DNA from: Takakia lepidozioides
Lineage: Eukaryota; Plantae; Bryophyta
Length of the DNA stretch: 64,000 bases
NCBI GenBank assembly: GCA_030704615.1
Contig: CM060734.1
Span: 45,322,001 to 45,386,000 of the forward strand
Direction: 5' to 3'
In this document: in pieces, positions 80-42,694 of the stretch
Position numbering within the stretch: position 1 is the stretch's first letter
Layout of the letters: every line of letters begins with the position of its first letter
Program-made: the position numbers and the translations under genes
The notes under the pieces: generated by a model
The model's input: the letters and a program-made list of their open reading frames with translations, nothing else
Database searches by the model: none
Told to the model about the DNA's origin: nothing

Positions 80-2060
80 TCATACGTGTACTAGAAAGCT
101 GATGCAACCTAAACATAAATTTGCATTTTGTAACTGTTGGATATGAGTATCAGGGTCACCTTGACCGGCCTCTTGTGCCGTATAAAAGTTCTTCATCTCT
201 CTGTGTTTTCTCTTAAGTACCTCGTTTTTCATACAACCAATAGTCACACCGGCAGACAATAAAGCAACAATCTGTCCAGCATGTGCTCCTTGTACATGGA
301 TATAAGGTGTAACAATATCCCCAATGGCCATGGTTGCATACCACATGAACTCCTTTTGTCACATACGCAATGCTGTAGATATCAATTTTATTTTTAGCAA
401 TGGCCTAAAATATTTGTAGATACCAGCAAACCAATTTGTATTAAACAATTTGAACCAATATATGTGCAAATTTACAAACATGTTCTCGCCAGAAGGCTCA
501 GTGCCTAATTCCCAAACATCGTAAGGTTGTTGAATGTAGTCAAATCATTGATAACAATCCCACATGTCTTTGAGTGTGCTCAAAGCGGTCGGGGATATGA
601 AAGCCTACGACGATCTACGCACACCACAATCGTGAGCTATATTAAACCATCACATAATATCGTGGACATTCCATAAACATGGAAATTATCAAAAATAATA
701 TATATTACTTATTTACGACATAAGCAATCGATGTTGCGCCAATATCCTATCGGAGATCACACCATTCGATTGCATATACAAGATATCCGCGTATTTGTGA
801 CTTTGTAAGTATGGGTATCCACACGACATGAAACTCGAAAATCTGGCCCCTACATACATATCATTTCACCATAAACTTATATTAAAATATTATTATGGTA
901 TGCAATTGAAAAATAATTAAATCCATATGATATGAGAATGGAACATTTAGTATAAGTATACTATGGTGCGTTACTAAATTAATAATTACATATGTGAATA
1001 GTTTTTAAAAACAAATTATCGTGAATAAGTTATATATATATATATATATATATGTATGATATATATATCTGTTGGAACCGACTTGGGACGCCTGTTGGAA
1101 CACGATGGATCTTGTCAGCCTCTTGTGCCATCATTTGCAAGTGTCGCATCATCTTAAGCACGGTGCGGATGATGGTATGTCTGGCGCAATATGATAGTGC
1201 ACTCATAGAGGGGGAGGGGAAAAAGATGGTCACCTATTTTTGGACGTATTTTCAATACAAATTAGCAATATAATAAAACCATGAGTAAGCAACGGTGTTT
1301 GGTTTACCATACAATACATCATACAAATGACGATTTACAAAAGCAAGTGTAGTATAATTTACGTCAAATATTGAATACTATTTAAACATTGGATGGACAA
1401 ATTACCTTGCTCGAATTATCACGATCCATAGGCCAATCTCGCAATACCTTCGCATGTGTAGCCATTTCATAGTCCGATGCCTATACAACGGCTAATGGGC
1501 TCATCGTGTGGCATCCCTTCAAGCCATGGGTTCAATTCTTGACACATCGTATCAACTTACATATTATACATGAAAATGACGAGGTAGAGACTTCATTGAT
1601 TTATATAGAATTTATCATTCGATATGTTATTCACATCATACATATAGGTAAATTGTATGATGAATTTATCGACACGTACCATAATGATGCGAACTCGAGT
1701 GACATACCGAGTTGACACAGACAAAATGGTGTCAAAAGGCTCAACCACATGTAAGTGAGTGATGTAGCTGGAAGTGACTTTGATAACGCTACACCAAGGG
1801 CAAAACGATGTGCCAATGGCGGAGACCTCACCTTTGCAAACGAGAACGTATATACAATGTAGATTCTGACACTCCACAAGAGTGAAGCGTACATGTCCAT
1901 CAGACATGCTCAGTCCATGTGTCATAAGTTCCCCCAACTGGTCGAAAAGATGGTATTCATCCGGAAATGCCTCCATATTGGCAATATTACAAAGCTATTC
2001 ATTATCAAATTGGTGTGGGAAGTCTCATGTACGCAATTTGTCTGTACAAAGCCGTAAATA
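80..2060 (-). pseudogene. Decayed multi-exon DDE transposase, RAG1/Transib-like
   Basis: Ordered motifs on the minus strand: IIYLRLCTD (D at 2040-2042), ECQ(N)LH..SFCPWC (1791-1865), YCARHTIIR (~1160-1190), SNGVISDRIL (~740-770), ALSTLKDMWDCY (~550-590), IVTPYIHVQGAH and IGCMKNEVL(K)RKH (200-320). In-frame stops and G>A changes at the putative catalytic codons. Confidence 0.65.
1031..1068. repeat. (TA)n microsatellite
   Basis: Directly visible TA run, interrupted near its end. Confidence 0.9.
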
Positions 2061-2804
2061 TATTATGCATAAGTTGTGAGGATTATGAGTTGGTTTTTAG
2101 CTAACCTTATGCATCTACATTAGATCGAAATAAATTTTTCTATTGTCTAAGATGCAAAATTGACATTGAACTGTGACAGATATTGGGCGGTTCGCTTTCA
2201 AGAGGCGACTGTCTTTTTTTTCGAACTTTGGAAACAAGATCATGGTGATGAATTTGTCATGAGCCAACTTGATGCATGGCCTTGCCATAAGCTCCATATG
2301 GAAGAAGTCAAGAAAAAGCTTTTGTTGGGACAAAGTTTATCATGGCTTGAACTAGACCTCTCTCCATGGATGTTATCGTCCTATGTGCCTTTATGGCCCA
2401 TAAAGAAAGGGGGCTATTTTCCCCCCTCCTCAAGGGCCTGAATTGTAGGCCGTCACTACCAGGTTTAATTTATTACCTAAATAAATAAATAAACATGTAT
2501 GGGAAAAAAAACAAGAAAATAATAATAATAATAATAGTATATGATGTGGATAGGCTAATTTTTTGAGTTTGTTTGATCATTTTTGCAATGTCTAATTTCC
2601 TTAAAATTGAAATGTTTGAATCTCATCAGTCATGTGTATGATATATTTTATTAAAATCTGTTTATTTTATTGGTTATAGTATCAGGGACCGGGGTTGATA
2701 TATGGAATAATATCACTTAAGATATATTAGTCTCAACTGTGACATCTGATGAAGAAATGAAAAACATGATTTACCTATGTCAAAGCGATATTGAAAATTT
2801 GAAC

Positions 2805-3030
2805 CAACATTCAGTAGCTCAGTTGGTAAAGTGCACTGAGTGCCATCCGGATGACCCTGGGTCAAATCCTGCTACTTGACGGGTGTGGTACGCTCTTCTC
2901 CCCCTTCTCTACGCAGTGTCGCATCAGAAAGCCTTACCGCGAGGTTACTGATAGGTTATTTTCTCCTCTCTCTATCAAGGGGCCTGATTTGTGAGCTCTC
3001 AGGTGTTTCCCTTTAAAAAAATAAAAATAA
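2805..3030 (+). mobile_element. tRNA-derived SINE
   Basis: A-box TAGCTCAGTTGG (2815-2826), B-box-like GGGTCAAATCC (2859-2869) and an A-rich tail. The tail GGGCCTGATTTGTGAGCT..CAGGTGTTTCC recurs at ~2425-2465, 14818-14885, 15315-15375 (-) and 42560-42615 (-). Confidence 0.7.
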
Positions 3031-3150
3031 ATTGGGGAACTTTATATACTAACTTGGGACCAGTCTCTCTTTCAAACTATGAAAAATTGGATTTCTTAGC
3101 CCTGATTGGTATGTTCCGAAGTCAATATATAGGCCAACACTGGTCAAGAC

Positions 3151-3977
3151 CAGTGTTGTGCGGGTATATTATTTTAAACATACCCTCCGGGTCGGGGTAA
3201 GAAGAAAATTTATTTTGTCTTACTCTCCGGTCCGGGTGTACTATATTTTCAAAATTATATTTACCCTCCGGATAAGGATATATTACTGCTGGTGCAATCT
3301 GAAGGGTATAAATAAATAGTAAAAATCCTCATTTATACCTTATGGATATAAATAAATACATGATATAGTTAAATAGATTTATTTCTATTCATTATCCAGT
3401 TATATATTCAATATATATGAGTGATATGCTTAACAATGCTTGCAATATTGATAAAATAATCCAGGGATAACGTACATAACACAACTTTATGAGCTTCAAA
3501 AACTAAAGGACTTAGAGGACTTAGGACTTAGAGCACAAGTGACTTTGGAAGCACCACAAGAGGGGTTGATTATGTAAGTGCCACAAGAGATTGGCCGGGG
3601 GTTGGCGGAGTTTGAACACATGGTGGGTGGATGCAGAGCGGTGGGCCCATCAATGACCAACTGAGGTGGTTGAGTGGGTTACCTGCAGCAGGGTTGGAGC
3701 AAGGCTGGAACCAATTGGAGAAAGGGTTAGGATGGGATAATGATTTACCCTCTGGGGATATACCCTTTGATTTGAACCTTACCCCCCTCCAGGACAGGGT
3801 ATATCGACACCCAAATAGCCCGGTTATGTACAGAGTAAAGGTAATTATCTGATAATTACCCTCCGGTTATATTCTAATGGCGGGTAAGTAAAACCGCCGG
3901 GTCCGGTTATAGTCAAATGGTTATACCCTGATATACTCGGCGGGTATACCTGTAAATGATATACCCGCACAACACTA
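3151..3977. mobile_element. Non-autonomous hAT DNA transposon
   Basis: TIRs CAGTGTTGTGCGGGTATAT / ATATACCCGCACAACACTA, a perfect 8-bp TSD GTCAAGAC (3143-3150, 3978-3985) and subterminal TACCCTCCGG repeats. Confidence 0.9.
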
Positions 3978-5349
3978 GTCAAGACCACCAGGCCATTTAT
4001 ATCTTTTTCCTACCCAAAATTCTAATTGCTACCAAATTAGAAGAGGTGGCATGCAATGAAGTGCAATAATGATATTACTGGTCGCGTTGTAGCTTTACAA
4101 AATGTGTGTGAATGCCAAAATATCTCCATTGCTACCAGATTGACACCAATCATACAAGCCTTTCACATAATACCCGTGCAAATGTAGAGCAAATTTCCGA
4201 AACACCAAACCTACGATCATGTATCGTAAAGTGACGATAGGAGCCAAACATAAAGATGGTATCAAGATGATATTGATTAGGTTGACTGATATGATAGATT
4301 AATACCAAGGTTAACATCTCACTAGTTCATATCTGAGGTTGGACCTAATACCAGATCAACACTCATGCAACTCAATACACAAATGAGGATAAAAAATTCA
4401 AATGTTCAACGAAGAATATTGACAACAACTGTAGAAGGGATGAAGACTCTTTCCGAAGCAAACCTGACTTATGGTGCCACTTCACTACTCCATTTTCATT
4501 TTGAAAGTGGACACCTTCTAATAGCTATACTGGAACAACGCGGTCGCCCAAACCTCCCCCAAGGACTCGAAAGTCCCTAGATACCTACACATTAAATAAC
4601 CGGTTGACCTAGGTACCCATTTTACTAGAGAGAGCATTGGGAATAATGCAAGAACTTAATGCATACATGCGATCAAAGATAGGACGGTACGCCGATTTTT
4701 GGCATGTCAAATCTTTCCCAACCCCCTCTAGAGAGTGAGATGGAACTAAAGGGAGTGTAACTGTAATCGAGGTAACAGTGGGTTACACGGAAGGGAGTGT
4801 AACTCTACTCGGTGTAAGTCCCATCTGGTCTTGAAATTTGGCTAGGTCCAGATTTGGCTAAGCATAAAATTTCCATTTTATCCTTCTTATTGGACATACA
4901 AAGGAGCCACGAGGGAATTTGGTCCTCAAATTTGGAGCTCTCCTTGGATGGTTTGTGAATATGGAGATCATCCCCTCAGGAAAATAATAAATTTGGAATT
5001 GACCTTGGTCAAACTACATTTTTCCAATAATATTTGTTTGAAGTTGAAAAAACTACAATGCATTTTTGTTATAATCTGCTTATCCCCACTCTCAAAATGC
5101 TCCCACCACGCTTAGGGGTTAACCCTTAAGTGCCAAAGCGACCCAAAACGGGTCGGTTAGGTTTCTTTAATCGCCCAATTTTTACTAGAATTAACTCCAC
5201 TTTGAATCGCGGAGAGGCACCTTTGCTAGGATTGGTGGGGGAAACATCCTCTCTCTGCAGCTTGACCCCAAAGACTGGAGCTGGAAATTCAACAACCGGC
5301 CAGTCCCCTTCTTTGCTTACGCGGCAAAGAAAGCTTACAGAGCCATGAT

Positions 5350-6430
5350 GGATGCCACCCCACTTATGAAAAAGTGGAAAGATAGATGGGGTCACTGGGG
5401 TTTCCATGAGGAGAACTGGAAGAGCGGTTGTTTGGGAAAAATGCAAGCCAGCCAAAATTAGTGCCTTTCTTTGGCAGGTTGCCAACATGGTATTGAAGGT
5501 GGGCCAATTCCTTAATTTCCAAGAGGTCATTCTGTGCATTTGCTGCTCAATCAACACGATTGAAACGCTAGAGCACTGTCTCCTGAATTGCCAAGCGCCC
5601 ACAACTATTTGGCCTCTAGTTCTTCAATTCTATAACATCTGGGAGAGCATGCCGGCCCAGCCCATCACTCTCCTCCTCAACTATGACAGGGGTAAAAAAT
5701 CTAAAGCCCAGGGATGCCCTGTCTTTGAAGTTCTTAGATATTCCACCCTGTGGCAATTGTGGAAAGCAAGGTGAGCATGGTCCCTTCAAAAGAAAAACAT
5801 TACCACCACGACTACTCACCCTGATTTTCTTTGATCTCACTGTAGCTGCTAAGAAGGCATGGCTGGTTTTGTGTGCCGCAGTCCAGAGACACCCAGGTCG
5901 TCAGCACTCACTCCTCACCGCCTTCCGATCAACTTGGGATTGGCGAGGACACATCTGCACATGTGTTGATGAGCACTCTTGTGCCTGGCCCGAAGGAATT
6001 CCCCCACTATGGCAACAACGCAGATCACTCCTATTCGGCTTCCCCAGAGTTCGACCTGTCTGACATTAACTGGAAGCGCATCAAGGGTCCTCCAAATCTA
6101 AGTTACATTTTCATAGATAGTTTAAGAGGCCCCTATGTGGCCCTTCTGGCTGCCCCTCTCGTTCTGCCTGTGGCTCTTCAATCAGCCTACCCAATTGGGC
6201 TGGTTGTAAGTTGTAAGCCTTATGGCCTTCTAGGTAAGTCACACTACTAGAGTGAGCCCCTCATAAAGGTAGTGCCTCTTCCCTATGTTTCCCTCCACAC
6301 TGGGCTACACCAAACAAGGTCTTGTGAGTACATTGTACATTCCTTACTCATGGCCTTCTTCCGCTTAGTTTTTCCTGGACTCCCTTCATATGATTTACCG
6401 GAGGGCCTCCGTCCCCTTTCTAAAATTCTT
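5350..6430 (+). mobile_element. L1-type LINE 3' fragment (zf-RVT region plus 3' UTR)
   Basis: ORF 5406-5774 reads VWEKCKPAKISAFLWQV..CICC..ETLEHCLLNC..LWQLWKAR, typical of the C-terminus of plant L1 ORF2. It is interrupted by a stop. Confidence 0.75.
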
Positions 6431-6780: not shown

Positions 6781-9517
6781 TTATTGATGGGAGCTTAAAC
6801 TGGAGTTGGCCACTAGCTGTAGTCCAGAAGGGTCGTCTTGGCACACCCTCAGATATGGTACCACCTCTTTCACATCCTTTCTATCCAAAGAATTCTCATA
6901 TGGGCATGAGAATTGTGTGGCGGCCGCCTGGTAACACGTATCCACTGCTTGATTTCTTGAACAACTTGGTGCCCCATAGTTGTTGTTTGAATCGTAGTTG
7001 ATAATCCAAGGTTGAAGACCCCCGTAGCCTTGTGCAACGGATCCAAAAGTGGACGTAGGCGTGGTGAGCAAAGAATCTGATAGACTGAGACAAAGCATCT
7101 CGACTAATGCTCTAAGATCCACATCCGTATTACCAAATGTTTGCAGACCTTCCTGGGAAAGTTGAACTAGCTCAATCGATTTCATCGCGTTGGAGGCGGT
7201 TGGATCTCCAGCTGCAGCACTTATATTATAGTACTGATCGAGATGGTCGTGGAAGCCGCTGTAGAGAGACGTAATGAACACAACCACCTGTTTTAATAGC
7301 AACGTTGAGGCGAGTTCGTGACCAATTCTATGAAACAGATTCTGTTTTTCTAAATACAGAATGCAGAATCTCTCAACTGGTGATCGTGTCCGATTAGCAA
7401 TAATGTATGCAAGCTTCTCTACGATGGAACCCATAATCATGACAGTAAGTTACTTCACATGATCTACCACACATCCTTCGGCGTCCATCAGCAATTATTG
7501 AAAGGCGCGACGATAAATTTTGTTTTTGTTGGAAGAAATCTTGAGGTAGAATGCCGGATTAAATGTCTTACCTTCTCGCTGAACCCGGCAGAGAAATTGG
7601 ATCCGTTGTTGCTGGGAAAATCGATTGCTTGCAATGCAGGTAAGAGGTTTTGTTGAATGGCACAGCTTGTGACCCGCTCATTCACAACATCATGGAGGGA
7701 GTTGTACATATCCCGGCCATGGAGAAACCTCATCTGCACCCCTACAACCCTGTCGGCTTTCGCAAAATGTTCTTGGTGAACTCTTTTCACCATCTCCCAT
7801 GCTGGATCCACTGGAAGTATTAAATACCTGCAAATCGCTCAAAGCGAGAGATATGGGTGAAGGATCTCAATAATAAGTCGCCAAGTTTCCTGGAAAACCT
7901 CGGATAGATGAAACAATATTTGGAAGACAATTCGGTACTCAATTTTAGTATACATGTCCACACGGAACGGAGTAGTCTTTCGGGGTGAAGTGGTCTCTCT
8001 CTAGTGCACAACATCGTGCATAGCACCCATACTCCATGGTATCATAGAGGACATTGACTTCACTAAATTGTGAGAGCTGTCTGGACAAAGATTGAGATAC
8101 GAGCCATAACCTAAATTATGTGACGTCCCCGTTTCATTTTAAGAGTTTCAACATTTTCAAGATGAGCATGAAAAAGTTCTGTCAGCTGTGAATGATTCTG
8201 AAGAGACTGCGCAATTTTGATTTTGCAACAATCTGGTCTACCAATTGAGAATTTCAAACTGTAACAGATTTCTCGAGAAACGATGTACCGTGAAACAAAC
8301 ACAGAGTCTAATGTGTACATATAGGTACCCTCAAAGTTTTGTAAGAGCTTTCATTGGGTCCGGATGGTCTTGACTTACCTCAGGAGGGGCGTGAGAGGGA
8401 CTCGATCCGCAAAAAGTTCCTCCAAGGCAGGACGGAACGCAGGAATAGTAAAGAGGGAGGGGAGGAAATACAGGCAGCCCCGATCCAGATTCAGCCATTG
8501 GACCTGCTCCAAAAATCTCTGCTCCGTGTCACAGAAAAATCTTGTCACTGGGCGACATTCCCATCCATCATTCAGCCGTACTGCATGGAAACTCGGATCA
8601 GACGACGTTAAATTGTTAATCGTGAGCGGCTCAGCGTTGACAACCATTCGAAGCCTCCTTGAATCTGCTCTCTGAGTACCAACTTCCTTTGAAGATACAT
8701 TTCTCTCCATTACTGAAGCATCCCATGTTTGGAAGAAGGGAGCCGCATCCACCCATTCGTCTTTGTGGGTAGCTTGGCGAGAAGAAATGCCAGCCGACGA
8801 ATAAGGAAAATCTGAAGGAGCCTGCCATGAGGACCCTGGGAAGGGCTCACAGAGAACTTGGTGCACAGTAGATCTCGTATCAACTAAAAGTACACGCTGC
8901 GTAAGAATAGCATAAACAAAATTTGAAAGCAGCCACAGAAGCCGATTCCCTAGCCCGCCTACGAATTCGACCACGAGGAAACTGCAGCCTTCAATGGCAT
9001 CTTTAGAATGAAACAGGTCCACCAGACTTCCTGCAGTACGTTGAGTGCAGGTTCGATGTAGATTCTCATATTCCCTTAGGATAGCTGTCAGCTTTGAGGA
9101 GTAACCAGCATCTGAATGGACTTTCCCGTGCTTCCTCGCGAAGAATAATGGAAACTCGCGCCGACTGTGACAGGGATAAGTGGCCTCCCACTCAAGCCTC
9201 TCACTCTCTGACAGGTCTTTTCCAGGCACACCCCCCGCCGCCTTGACTGCTTCCTGAAGCTTTTGTAGCAGAACTTCTGCAGGGGTAGGCATTGGCGCAA
9301 GACCATATTCGACCAAAAGCCCCCATCTATTGAGATATCCAGTAGCCAGCCATTTAGGCTCTATCGAGAAAACTCTAGAGACGCAAAGTGTGCTGGCCAG
9401 ACAGATGAACGATAATGTAAGATGCACTGCGTACTTCCTAAGTATGCTCGTATAATTAATTCCGATAGTCCACTTGACTCCAGCTTTAAGTTTTAGTTTG
9501 TTGATTGCTACCACCAT
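6781..9517 (-). CDS. Xyloglucan (galactoside 2-alpha-L-) fucosyltransferase, GT37; exons 9517-8379, 7827-7572, 7341-6781 (~651 aa)
   Basis: N-terminal TM segment and motifs GGLGNRLL, LTQRVLLVD, LCEPFPGSSW, VGVQMRF, STFGSVAQGYGGLQPW. GT-AG junctions are phase-consistent (LLR/YLILP, SEK/NLF). Confidence 0.9.
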
Positions 9518-12852: not shown

Positions 12853-15473
12853 TATCTGGCCTATGCATACATTTATAAACATTGAATACACTCCAATAAT
12901 TACTTCCAAACCACAACATATTAAATACTTAAAGAATCATTTTAACATTAAAATATTTTTTGTTCAACGAAAAACAAATGATACCATATATAAACTCTGA
13001 TTCAACTAGTACATTAAGGAAAAGCCACACCTTGCGATTGCAGTTGTCCCACCATCGTGAGTGACATAAGGAATATTCTTTGTAATGTGCTATGCTCATG
13101 CAAAAATCCGCTCATGCTCACTGTTTGTGAGGCGAAACCTTGAGTAGTATAGCAAACCTCCCTAAACCTATAGCTGCGGCGGCGGGGTTTCACATTGAGA
13201 AACCCGTGATATAGATCCAAACTTTCTATACGAAAATCCCGCCCAACAATCCCACATCCAAAAATAGGCTTTCAATGCCCAATATTTGGATTTTTAGCAT
13301 AATATACATGTTTTGATATTCATGTTCAGTATCATGAGAGAGAATAGGTTTAGGATATATGTTTCGATGTATTCTATGGCATATGGAAATCTCTCCGGGT
13401 ATTGGAGCATAAACCCTATATTTTTTCAATTTTTCCCTGAGAAGGAGTATCTCAAAATCAATAAGTAGTTTTAGGGGTCAGAGTTTCACCTTGCGAAATT
13501 AAGCTCAAAAAGTTTATAGTCCCGACTGATTCTACTGATTAACTGCTGCCTGGTCCAACGTAATAATTATCCATTGGTGAGGACCTCAGATGTGACTTGC
13601 AGTCTCATCGCCCACTCTCGCGCCAATTATGAAAAAGGTCTGGTATCGTGTGAGCACAACTTGAGGAAAATCCACGCCTATAGGATAACATGTTTATTAT
13701 GTATAGGGGTTACTTGTTCTTTATGTGTTGTAACTAGTGCTCATGTGAACCTTTGGAAATAGTTTCATAAGTTTATAAGTTTCACAAATTATTATTTTGC
13801 TATAGGATATTCTTCGAATATCAAGGGAATTCACAGCATATGCCCTCCTGCTCATGTGCTAAGCTCACCAAGCTCGGCGAGCTATGCATAAGGAAAACAT
13901 TAGTAAAGGCAATCAACATTACATTAGCGTTGCTCCCAGGTTTCCTTTGATGAAAAAAAAAAGAAAAAAGACATTAGCAAAGACTATCAAAATTTGTTGG
14001 TCCCTGATATGGGCAATAGCCGTAAGGTGAGGTGGCTCTTGAAGTCTCTCTCTCCCTCTCTCTCTCTAGTCTGCTGGTCTTTGATGTGAAATGGAAATCT
14101 ACTTCAACTACCAGTTAGTCATGGCAACAACTATACACTCAGTCAACACTCTGTAAAACTTTATAAAAGACCCGAATGAGGCGATTGTACAAGAGTTAAC
14201 AAGAACCTCCATTTGGAAAATTAAAAGCCCATAAACAAAGGGATATACAAGCCACGGGCCCCATTTTCACTGGGCGCGTGCAACGGTTCTTAGATCTCAG
14301 CTTAAGGTATGGTAGAGCATAAAGTGGAGCACACATGTGGTCAAATGGGCGCCACACTATGGCACCCTCAATATCTATGTGGAACAAGATTTGCGTTGCC
14401 GGGCCACCTTCAACCTCTCTTGTGAATTTCCACCCTCTTACACTCCGGACGTCTTCACAAAATGTAGGTATGAAAGGGAACACACCTCATCTTTCAACGC
14501 AGACTTTTCCTTGCTAGAGTGTGTGCGATTGACGTGGAATGGGAGTCTAGATAAGATCAGCGTTGGGCAAATATTAAGTTCTCATGTTGGGTATTGAGAA
14601 CCGGGCGGTGGATATAACTCAAGAGATACCCCCACTTTATCAATGACCCGCGGATATTACATTTTGAAAACCCCATATCTGGATCAAGGTTGTAGATACA
14701 AGAAACTGACGTACCCAAAATCCATGCAACTATTAGGCTAGTTCCCGACACATATATCAATTGACTCATGGGTGGTGTCCCATTCCTACGCCTTCATGGC
14801 GCGGTTACTGTGAAAGAGGTTATTTTCTCCTCTCACTATTAAGGGGCTTGATTTGTGTTTCCCTCTTTAAAAATAATAATAATAAAATTGTACATAATAC
14901 ACATTCATCCTTATTGGTGAAATTTTGTTGCTAACCTTAAAAGGGATATCCAGAATATATGGAATATGCTTTGGCCCTTCAGGCCTAGTCAAAGTGTTGC
15001 CCACCGTTAGCATGACCAACAAAAGACTCATGAAATAAAAATGTAGAATAACTTAGAGAAAGAGTGGCTAATGAGGATGGTCTATTTGTTGGAAGTAGAG
15101 TTATTTTTTTATTTAATTGATAGAAGTAGAGTAATAAATATAAAAATGCCCATTGGTCAGTGCTATAATAATAATTTCCTCCTCCTCCAAATTGTCAGCT
15201 ATACGGTGTTTTTAAATTTTAAAACAAATTTAATACATTTTTATATTGACCTTCAAGTAACGCTAGTCAGTGACTTGTCGTTGACATCAGTGGTCTTTGT
15301 ATATGTGTGTTTTTTTATTTTTTTACTTTTTAATGGAAACACCTGGGGCGACAGCTCACAAATCAGGCCCTTAGATATGTGTTATTTTTACCTTGGGTTC
15401 TGATCTACTATTCAGTCTTGCAAAAAAAGATAGAAAAAAAAAACAATTAACTGTGCAAAAGCCTGTGAAGCCA

Positions 15474-41866: not shown

Positions 41867-42694
41867 CAAGATCTAGACAATGGGAAAGAGAGTAGATAAA
41901 AAGGGAGATCCAAGGATAAGCTAAAGTGTGATGGCAAACATTCCAGAAGGTAACAACATAGGGGGGGGGGTCCACCGACACAACCAACGGTCCGATTACT
42001 CTGCAACTGCTGCTGTCAACGTCACAACAGTTTTAACCCTGCCTTGCTCCCTTTCATCCATTCGTCAACCGAATCCGTGCCTGACATGAACTTTTTGGCC
42101 GTGGGTCCTTCCCTCCCCACCGACCCTATAGTAACTTAAAAGCATGTAAAGCAATGCCTGAAAATTTGGTATGTAGAAATGGGGGCGTAGTATCATTTTG
42201 GCGTGTGGCGGTCGGTGGATAGCCAGTGCCCGCTCTAAGTTAGTTTGGGGGTTGGTAACTTGAATGTGAGCACGTGAGTGCATCCAAATGGAGGCGTGAG
42301 CACAAAAAACAGCAATACGGTACCCATGCTTGCCCGCGACTAGGGTCTCTTTTTTAATTTAACTTTGGTTAATTTATTTGAATTATTGAAGGGAAAAAAA
42401 TTAAAACCCTTGATGCCTGTGGGCTGCCATAAGGCTTTGTACCGTATATATTTTACAAATTGGTAGTCTGCCAAAAGAATAGGGAAACCAAAGTCACAAA
42501 TACCAACACCATCCAAAACACACAATTAATCTCAAATAATTAATTCAATAATTTTTTTATTTTTTATTTTTTGAAGGAAACCTGGGAGCGACTGCTCACA
42601 ATTCAGGCCTTTGAGGAGTTAATGTAGTAAAGTACACTGTGACAGCAGTCGCCAGGAAAATAAATCGAGAGTCTAGACTTTCCAGTATTGTAAC

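Follow-up and report, generated by a model that had tools for sequence, protein, structure and literature searches.

A dead transposase relic in Takakia lepidozioides, probably of the CMCT clade

The left end of a 64-kb stretch of Takakia lepidozioides DNA (here, the window) carries on its minus strand the remains of an intron-containing gene. We consider it probable, at roughly 75%, that these remains are a dead, 5'-truncated transposase copy from a cut-and-paste DNA transposon family of moss-type genomes, and that the family belongs to the CMCT clade. The initial annotation of the window had proposed an inactivated, intron-containing DDE transposase relic, and this proposal is supported: N and K stand where the family has D and E, and the exons are interrupted. 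The relic is real, but it is probably no new kind of element, its hallmarks being those of the known CMCT group.

Relatives and exon structure of the relic

The window exons were searched individually. With the 105-aa exon 1994-1680, phmmer retrieves 19 clusters of relatives at E<=1e-3 from 1.84 billion proteins. Four clusters reach E<=1e-10, and P0001 is the top match (E 1.9e-17, 41% identity). All 19 matches are unspliced open reading frame (ORF) fragments from raw assemblies, none of which carries a name, and the clusters (formed at 50% identity) are mostly broken ORFs on eukaryotic contigs. A tblastx comparison with L003, an independent copy, aligns the relic in seven collinear blocks (joint E 1.4e-53). 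The seven peptide segments of the initial annotation all lie on the minus strand and follow one another as it had listed them: LRLCTD, NE*LCNIANMEAFPDEY, ECQNLH..GTSFCPWC, YCARHTIIR, SNGVISDRIL, ALSTLKDMWDCY and IVTPYIHVQGAH..IGCMKNEVLKRKH. Together with two further exons added below, they recur in L003 and L004 in the same order and on one strand, and the co-occurrence test that the annotation had put forward is thereby passed. The lack of Pfam matches is what one would see if the segments were random open reading frames of AT-rich DNA between genes; this reading is already refuted by the E value of P0001 in an exhaustive search and by the collinear multi-exon matches at other loci, and we give it next to no weight.

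From the 5' side of the gene, the relic and the stretch before it read as follows.

2010-2096, minus strand: degenerate stretch with LRLCTD at 2057-2040 and a stop (TGA) at 2027-2025; it is, at most, what decay has left of the 'CEVxLELLHD' strand of the family
1680-2006, minus strand: main exon block, with a helix and strand up to the second catalytic position (ECQNLH), then CxxC (FCPWC)
1406-1480, minus strand: small 25-codon exon (..VLRDWPMDRDNSSK), bordered by AG at 1482-1481 and GT at 1405-1404
1083-1233, minus strand: YCARHTIIR exon block, carrying the conserved motif YCxRH; AG at 1235-1234
719-849, minus strand: SNGVISDRIL exon block, a collinear tblastx block with 38% identity to L003/L004
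518-604, minus strand: ..MWDCYQ exon block (tblastx: 565-518 against L003 5450-5497)
137-358, minus strand: zinc-pair/glutamate exon block with YIHVQGAH (H-x4-H) and the KNEVLKRKHRE helix, 50-55% identical to L003
1-43, minus strand: start of a further exon (..EWDRMCLDME), which continues past the left window edge

The main exon block is 40% identical to L003 over 110 aa (tblastx) and ends at a GT donor at 1679-1678, as read from the splice bases. Identity of the small exon is 80% to L003/L004 and 60-67% to L001, L002 and L007, loci of the host-type subgroup described below. The YCARHTIIR exon matches L003/L004 at E 3e-9 and L001 at 6e-8 (tblastn); a (TA)n microsatellite has overrun its 3' end (about 1070-1025). 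The L003 counterpart of SNGVISDRIL reads SDGIISDRFL, and the exon at 43-1 is 64% identical to L003 5963-6004, with the same motif in P0048. Upstream of about 2006 there is no tblastn or tblastx match, and LRLCTD has no significant match. While the segments listed by the initial annotation stand, its limits of 80-2060 do not: the relic runs from about 2006 to below 1. The exons at 1480-1406 and 43-1 had been missed.

A word search with P0004 returned unspliced ORF fragments only and, therefore, no full-length protein to fold; the searched protein databases hold no full-length spliced protein of the family. A metagenome scan gave no match. The gene of L008, a locus examined for a complete element, does not translate to the query, and the locus yielded no downstream exons; copy and inverted-repeat searches found neither a second copy nor candidate termini within the window. 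One of the family's ORFs, P0018 (363 aa), consists of tandem repeat units with the FCPWC motif and is apparently a tandemly amplified transposase-exon fragment.

Catalytic columns and the host-type subgroup

Alignments A1, A2 and A5 split the family into two subgroups. The transposable element (TE) type comprises the window copy, P0001-3, P0005-10, P0013-16, P0019 and L003, and is marked by the motifs IANxEAFP, ECHD and KNEVxERKHRE. The host type comprises P0004, P0011, P0012 and P0020-25.

In the window copy, AAT at 1865-1863 encodes the N of ECQNLH and AAG at 214-212 encodes the K of KNEVLKRKHRE, just as the initial annotation had read them. Its view that N and K are mutated catalytic D and E is borne out by family conservation at both columns: among 15 TE-type sequences the first of these columns holds D in eight and N in four, and in the second all but one of the 12 other TE-type relatives have E (21-sequence alignment A5). 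The CxxC pair (FCPWC), 21 residues after the D column, is present in the window copy, and so is the H-x4-H of the last large exon, which lies ahead of the E helix and is nearly invariant in the family.

The family's first catalytic D belongs to FKLxID, some 50 residues ahead of IAN (alignment A1), and in TE-type copies an exon of its own, further upstream, encodes it (L011 9886-9957). The first-D region and the 360 N-terminal residues of P0004 have no match anywhere in the 64-kb window. LRLCTD had been taken for the D600 equivalent, an assignment that fails, the first D belonging to FKLxID in an upstream exon absent here. At most, LRLCTD corresponds to the LELLHD strand, which is not catalytic. 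In the main exon block an in-frame TAG (1997-1995) interrupts a frame that is open in L003, and further downstream an in-frame TGA (547-545) stands where L003 reads R. Judged from its sequence, the window copy is dead and 5'-truncated, because the first-D exon is absent, D has changed to N and E to K, and two stops lie in homologous blocks; with one exon end overrun by a microsatellite as well, it cannot act.

The host-type gene lies downstream of DNAJC11 in two assemblies (L001:9635-13806 and L007:10001-13151, 85% identical). Its second catalytic column is H in all nine host-type sequences, and there is an extra intron within the E motif (from a reading of the frames). TE type and host type agree in the position of the exon-1 donor and of the small second exon. 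By these sequence features, the host-type gene looks like a domesticated, apparently catalytically disabled derivative of the family. Long single ORFs are found downstream of it at L001:15079-18645 (1188 aa) and L007:15891-18527 (878 aa), with no Pfam match on record.

Given a host gene of this kind, the window locus might be a decayed duplicate of it rather than a transposon copy. Beyond the main exon, the first two introns fall at the same places in host type and window copy, and the identity between them is 37-56% per exon. However, the window copy has the TE-type motifs IANxEAFP and KNEVxxRKHRE and is nearer to P0001, P0002 and L003 (40-55%) than to the host type, in which the second catalytic column is never D or N. 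Nor is there a DNAJC11 beside it: its neighbours are a LINE (long interspersed nuclear element) fragment and a fucosyltransferase gene. We therefore regard a host-gene duplicate as quite improbable and keep to the transposon copy. The initial annotation had also raised horizontal acquisition. If recent, such an event is unlikely because of the diversity of the relatives, with 19 clusters at 50% identity, and because of the syntenic host gene, present in two assemblies, whose first two introns past the main exon are placed as in the window copy.

Placement within the CMCT clade

The layout D..D-CxxC..HxxxxH..E is a hallmark of the entire CMCT clade, including plant CACTA and Lanisha; termini in this clade are 5'-CA..TG-3', and the target-site duplication is 2-5 bp (PMC12730594). 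The family has the corresponding DDE triad (the D of FKLxID, the D of ECHD and the E of KNEVxE) with RNase H-like secondary structure, and both zinc motifs are in the window: FCPWC 21 residues past the D column and YIHVQGAH before the E helix. In active relatives, an RNase H-fold core would carry the triad, with the first D on strand 1, the second at the end of strand 4 and the E in the KNEVxE helix. By analogy, the chemistry would be a nick followed by a hairpin or by strand transfer.

Within the CMCT reading we lean, somewhat beyond an even bet, towards membership in Lanisha. Lanisha was first described, as a new cut-and-paste superfamily, from Ceratodon purpureus, a moss (Carey et al. 2021, PMC8245031; GenBank MT647524). 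In Kojima's tree it lies outside the Transib clade, with other representatives from Rhizophagus (Mucoromycota) and Stylophora (Cnidaria) (PMC12730594). Lanisha is multi-copy in the moss; the family, probably likewise a cut-and-paste DNA transposon group, resembles it in having no Pfam entry, and the phyla of the other Lanisha representatives are those of the two nearest Atlas clusters. Identity with Lanisha is inferred from these likenesses. Lanisha is reportedly credited to Maumus, McDaniel and Carey (2020, Repbase Reports) as well.

Profile searches gave no assignment to CACTA, hAT or MULE transposases; such an assignment is what the initial annotation had named as counting against it. Pfam searches of four window ORF pieces, seven relatives and all 24 members of alignment A2 found no transposase family and some zinc-ribbon noise; RAG1 domains, Transposase_21 (PF02992) and Plavaka were all without a match at E<=1 in the 24 members. 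Neither RAG1 nor Transib came up in sequence searches of the PDB, whether the query was a window exon, P0007 or, at E<=10, one of profiles A1 and A3. The sole match was the LysM protein 4uz2 (E 0.0025), to the window exon piece HVVEPFDTILSVSTRYV; a weakly LysM-like stretch follows the CxxC at 1680-1760 (minus strand). Pfam matches LysM in one of the 24 members (E 6.6e-4), P0007 matches nothing in the PDB, and by sequence the LysM signal is sporadic.

For the fold we modelled P0023, a 292-aa single-exon relative, from 24 aligned sequences. Model quality is poor (pLDDT 48.8), but the order of strands and helices is RNase H-like. Foldseek found no match at E<=1e-3; its list was headed by Hermes, HzTransib and RAG1. 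Among solved structures, good matches of a family model are confined to RAG1, Transib and ProtoRAG, and a Transib/RAG1-like fold across pre-RNase H, RNase H and the start of ZnC2 is possible. By shape, the Atlas puts hypothetical proteins from Mucoromycota (TM 0.47-0.51) and a Transposase_21 cluster (TM 0.43) nearby and lists no RAG1 cluster. By features, the window exon has weak neighbours in Plavaka (0.95) and Transposase_21 (0.93), and P0026 is nearest to Mucoromycota (0.97) and Cnidaria (0.96) clusters, then to RAG1_RNase_H/RAG1_ZnC2 clusters (0.90-0.95). The Atlas evidence on affinity is mixed. EnSpm/CACTA and Plavaka share the motif layout of the moss family (PMC12730594) and are among these weak feature and shape neighbours, but differ from it in the Pfam searches given above.

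The initial annotation had gone from the motifs to the Transib/RAG1 lineage specifically, a step that is unsupported, the motifs being common to CMCT. On such a reading the family would be a true plant branch of that lineage, sister to or within Transib and distinct from Lanisha and CMC-type elements: a separate land-plant lineage with introns, a host-gene derivative that has been domesticated, and a LysM-like insert behind the zinc cysteines. Among the solved chains matched here, however, CMCT is represented by RAG1, Transib and ProtoRAG alone. Any member of the clade would therefore have its best PDB match there, and such a match assigns a protein to CMCT without assigning it to the Transib lineage. 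The fungal ESTA transposases, too, are assigned to RAG1 by HHpred (PMC12730594). The other results that bear on this branch have been given: the absence of Pfam RAG1 domains in the 24 members, an Atlas shape list with a Transposase_21 cluster and no RAG1 cluster, window-exon feature matches to Plavaka and Transposase_21, and the position of Lanisha in Kojima's tree all speak against it. The RAG1-like transposases of known structure (Transib, RAG1 and ProtoRAG; PDB 6pqn, 4wwx and 6b40) have no sequence-profile match to the moss family, which differs from them further in its many spliceosomal introns, in the weakly LysM-like stretch after the CxxC and in having no RAG2-like gene visible here. 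Transib and RAG1 are marked besides by a 5-bp target-site duplication and CAC-type heptamer termini; the ends of the moss element lie outside the window. We judge the plant Transib/RAG1 branch unlikely. If true, a land-plant branch next to Transib/RAG1 would extend the RAG1/Transib lineage into plants.

Neighbourhood and significance

To the right of the relic, the window carries a LINE-type reverse-transcriptase zinc-binding tail at 5370-5771 (plus strand; Pfam zf-RVT, E 2e-7). Exons of a xyloglucan fucosyltransferase (GT37) gene follow at 6784-7838 (minus strand; Pfam XG_FTase, E 6e-15 and 8e-11); this family is plant-specific, and the gene confirms that the DNA is that of a plant. Several repeats lie nearby. 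At 3141-3987 there is a unit of about 850 bp that resembles a miniature inverted-repeat transposable element, with 34-nt inverted repeats at its ends (88% complementary). A tRNA-like head at 2822-2890 (plus strand) has the look of an A-box and B-box and is a candidate short interspersed nuclear element, called by neither ARAGORN nor Rfam. The sequence beside it (2939-3031) is repeated at 14799-14886 and 15314-15377, and that at 2426-2493 is repeated at 42552-42618.

The locus itself means little: it is another dead fragment of a repeat family. For the family, two points are of modest value. A plant transposase that is nearest to RAG1/Transib among solved structures illustrates that RAG1 architecture marks the broad CMCT clade and not RAG ancestry. 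The syntenic DNAJC11-adjoining host gene, an apparently catalytically disabled derivative of the family, is testable in model mosses.
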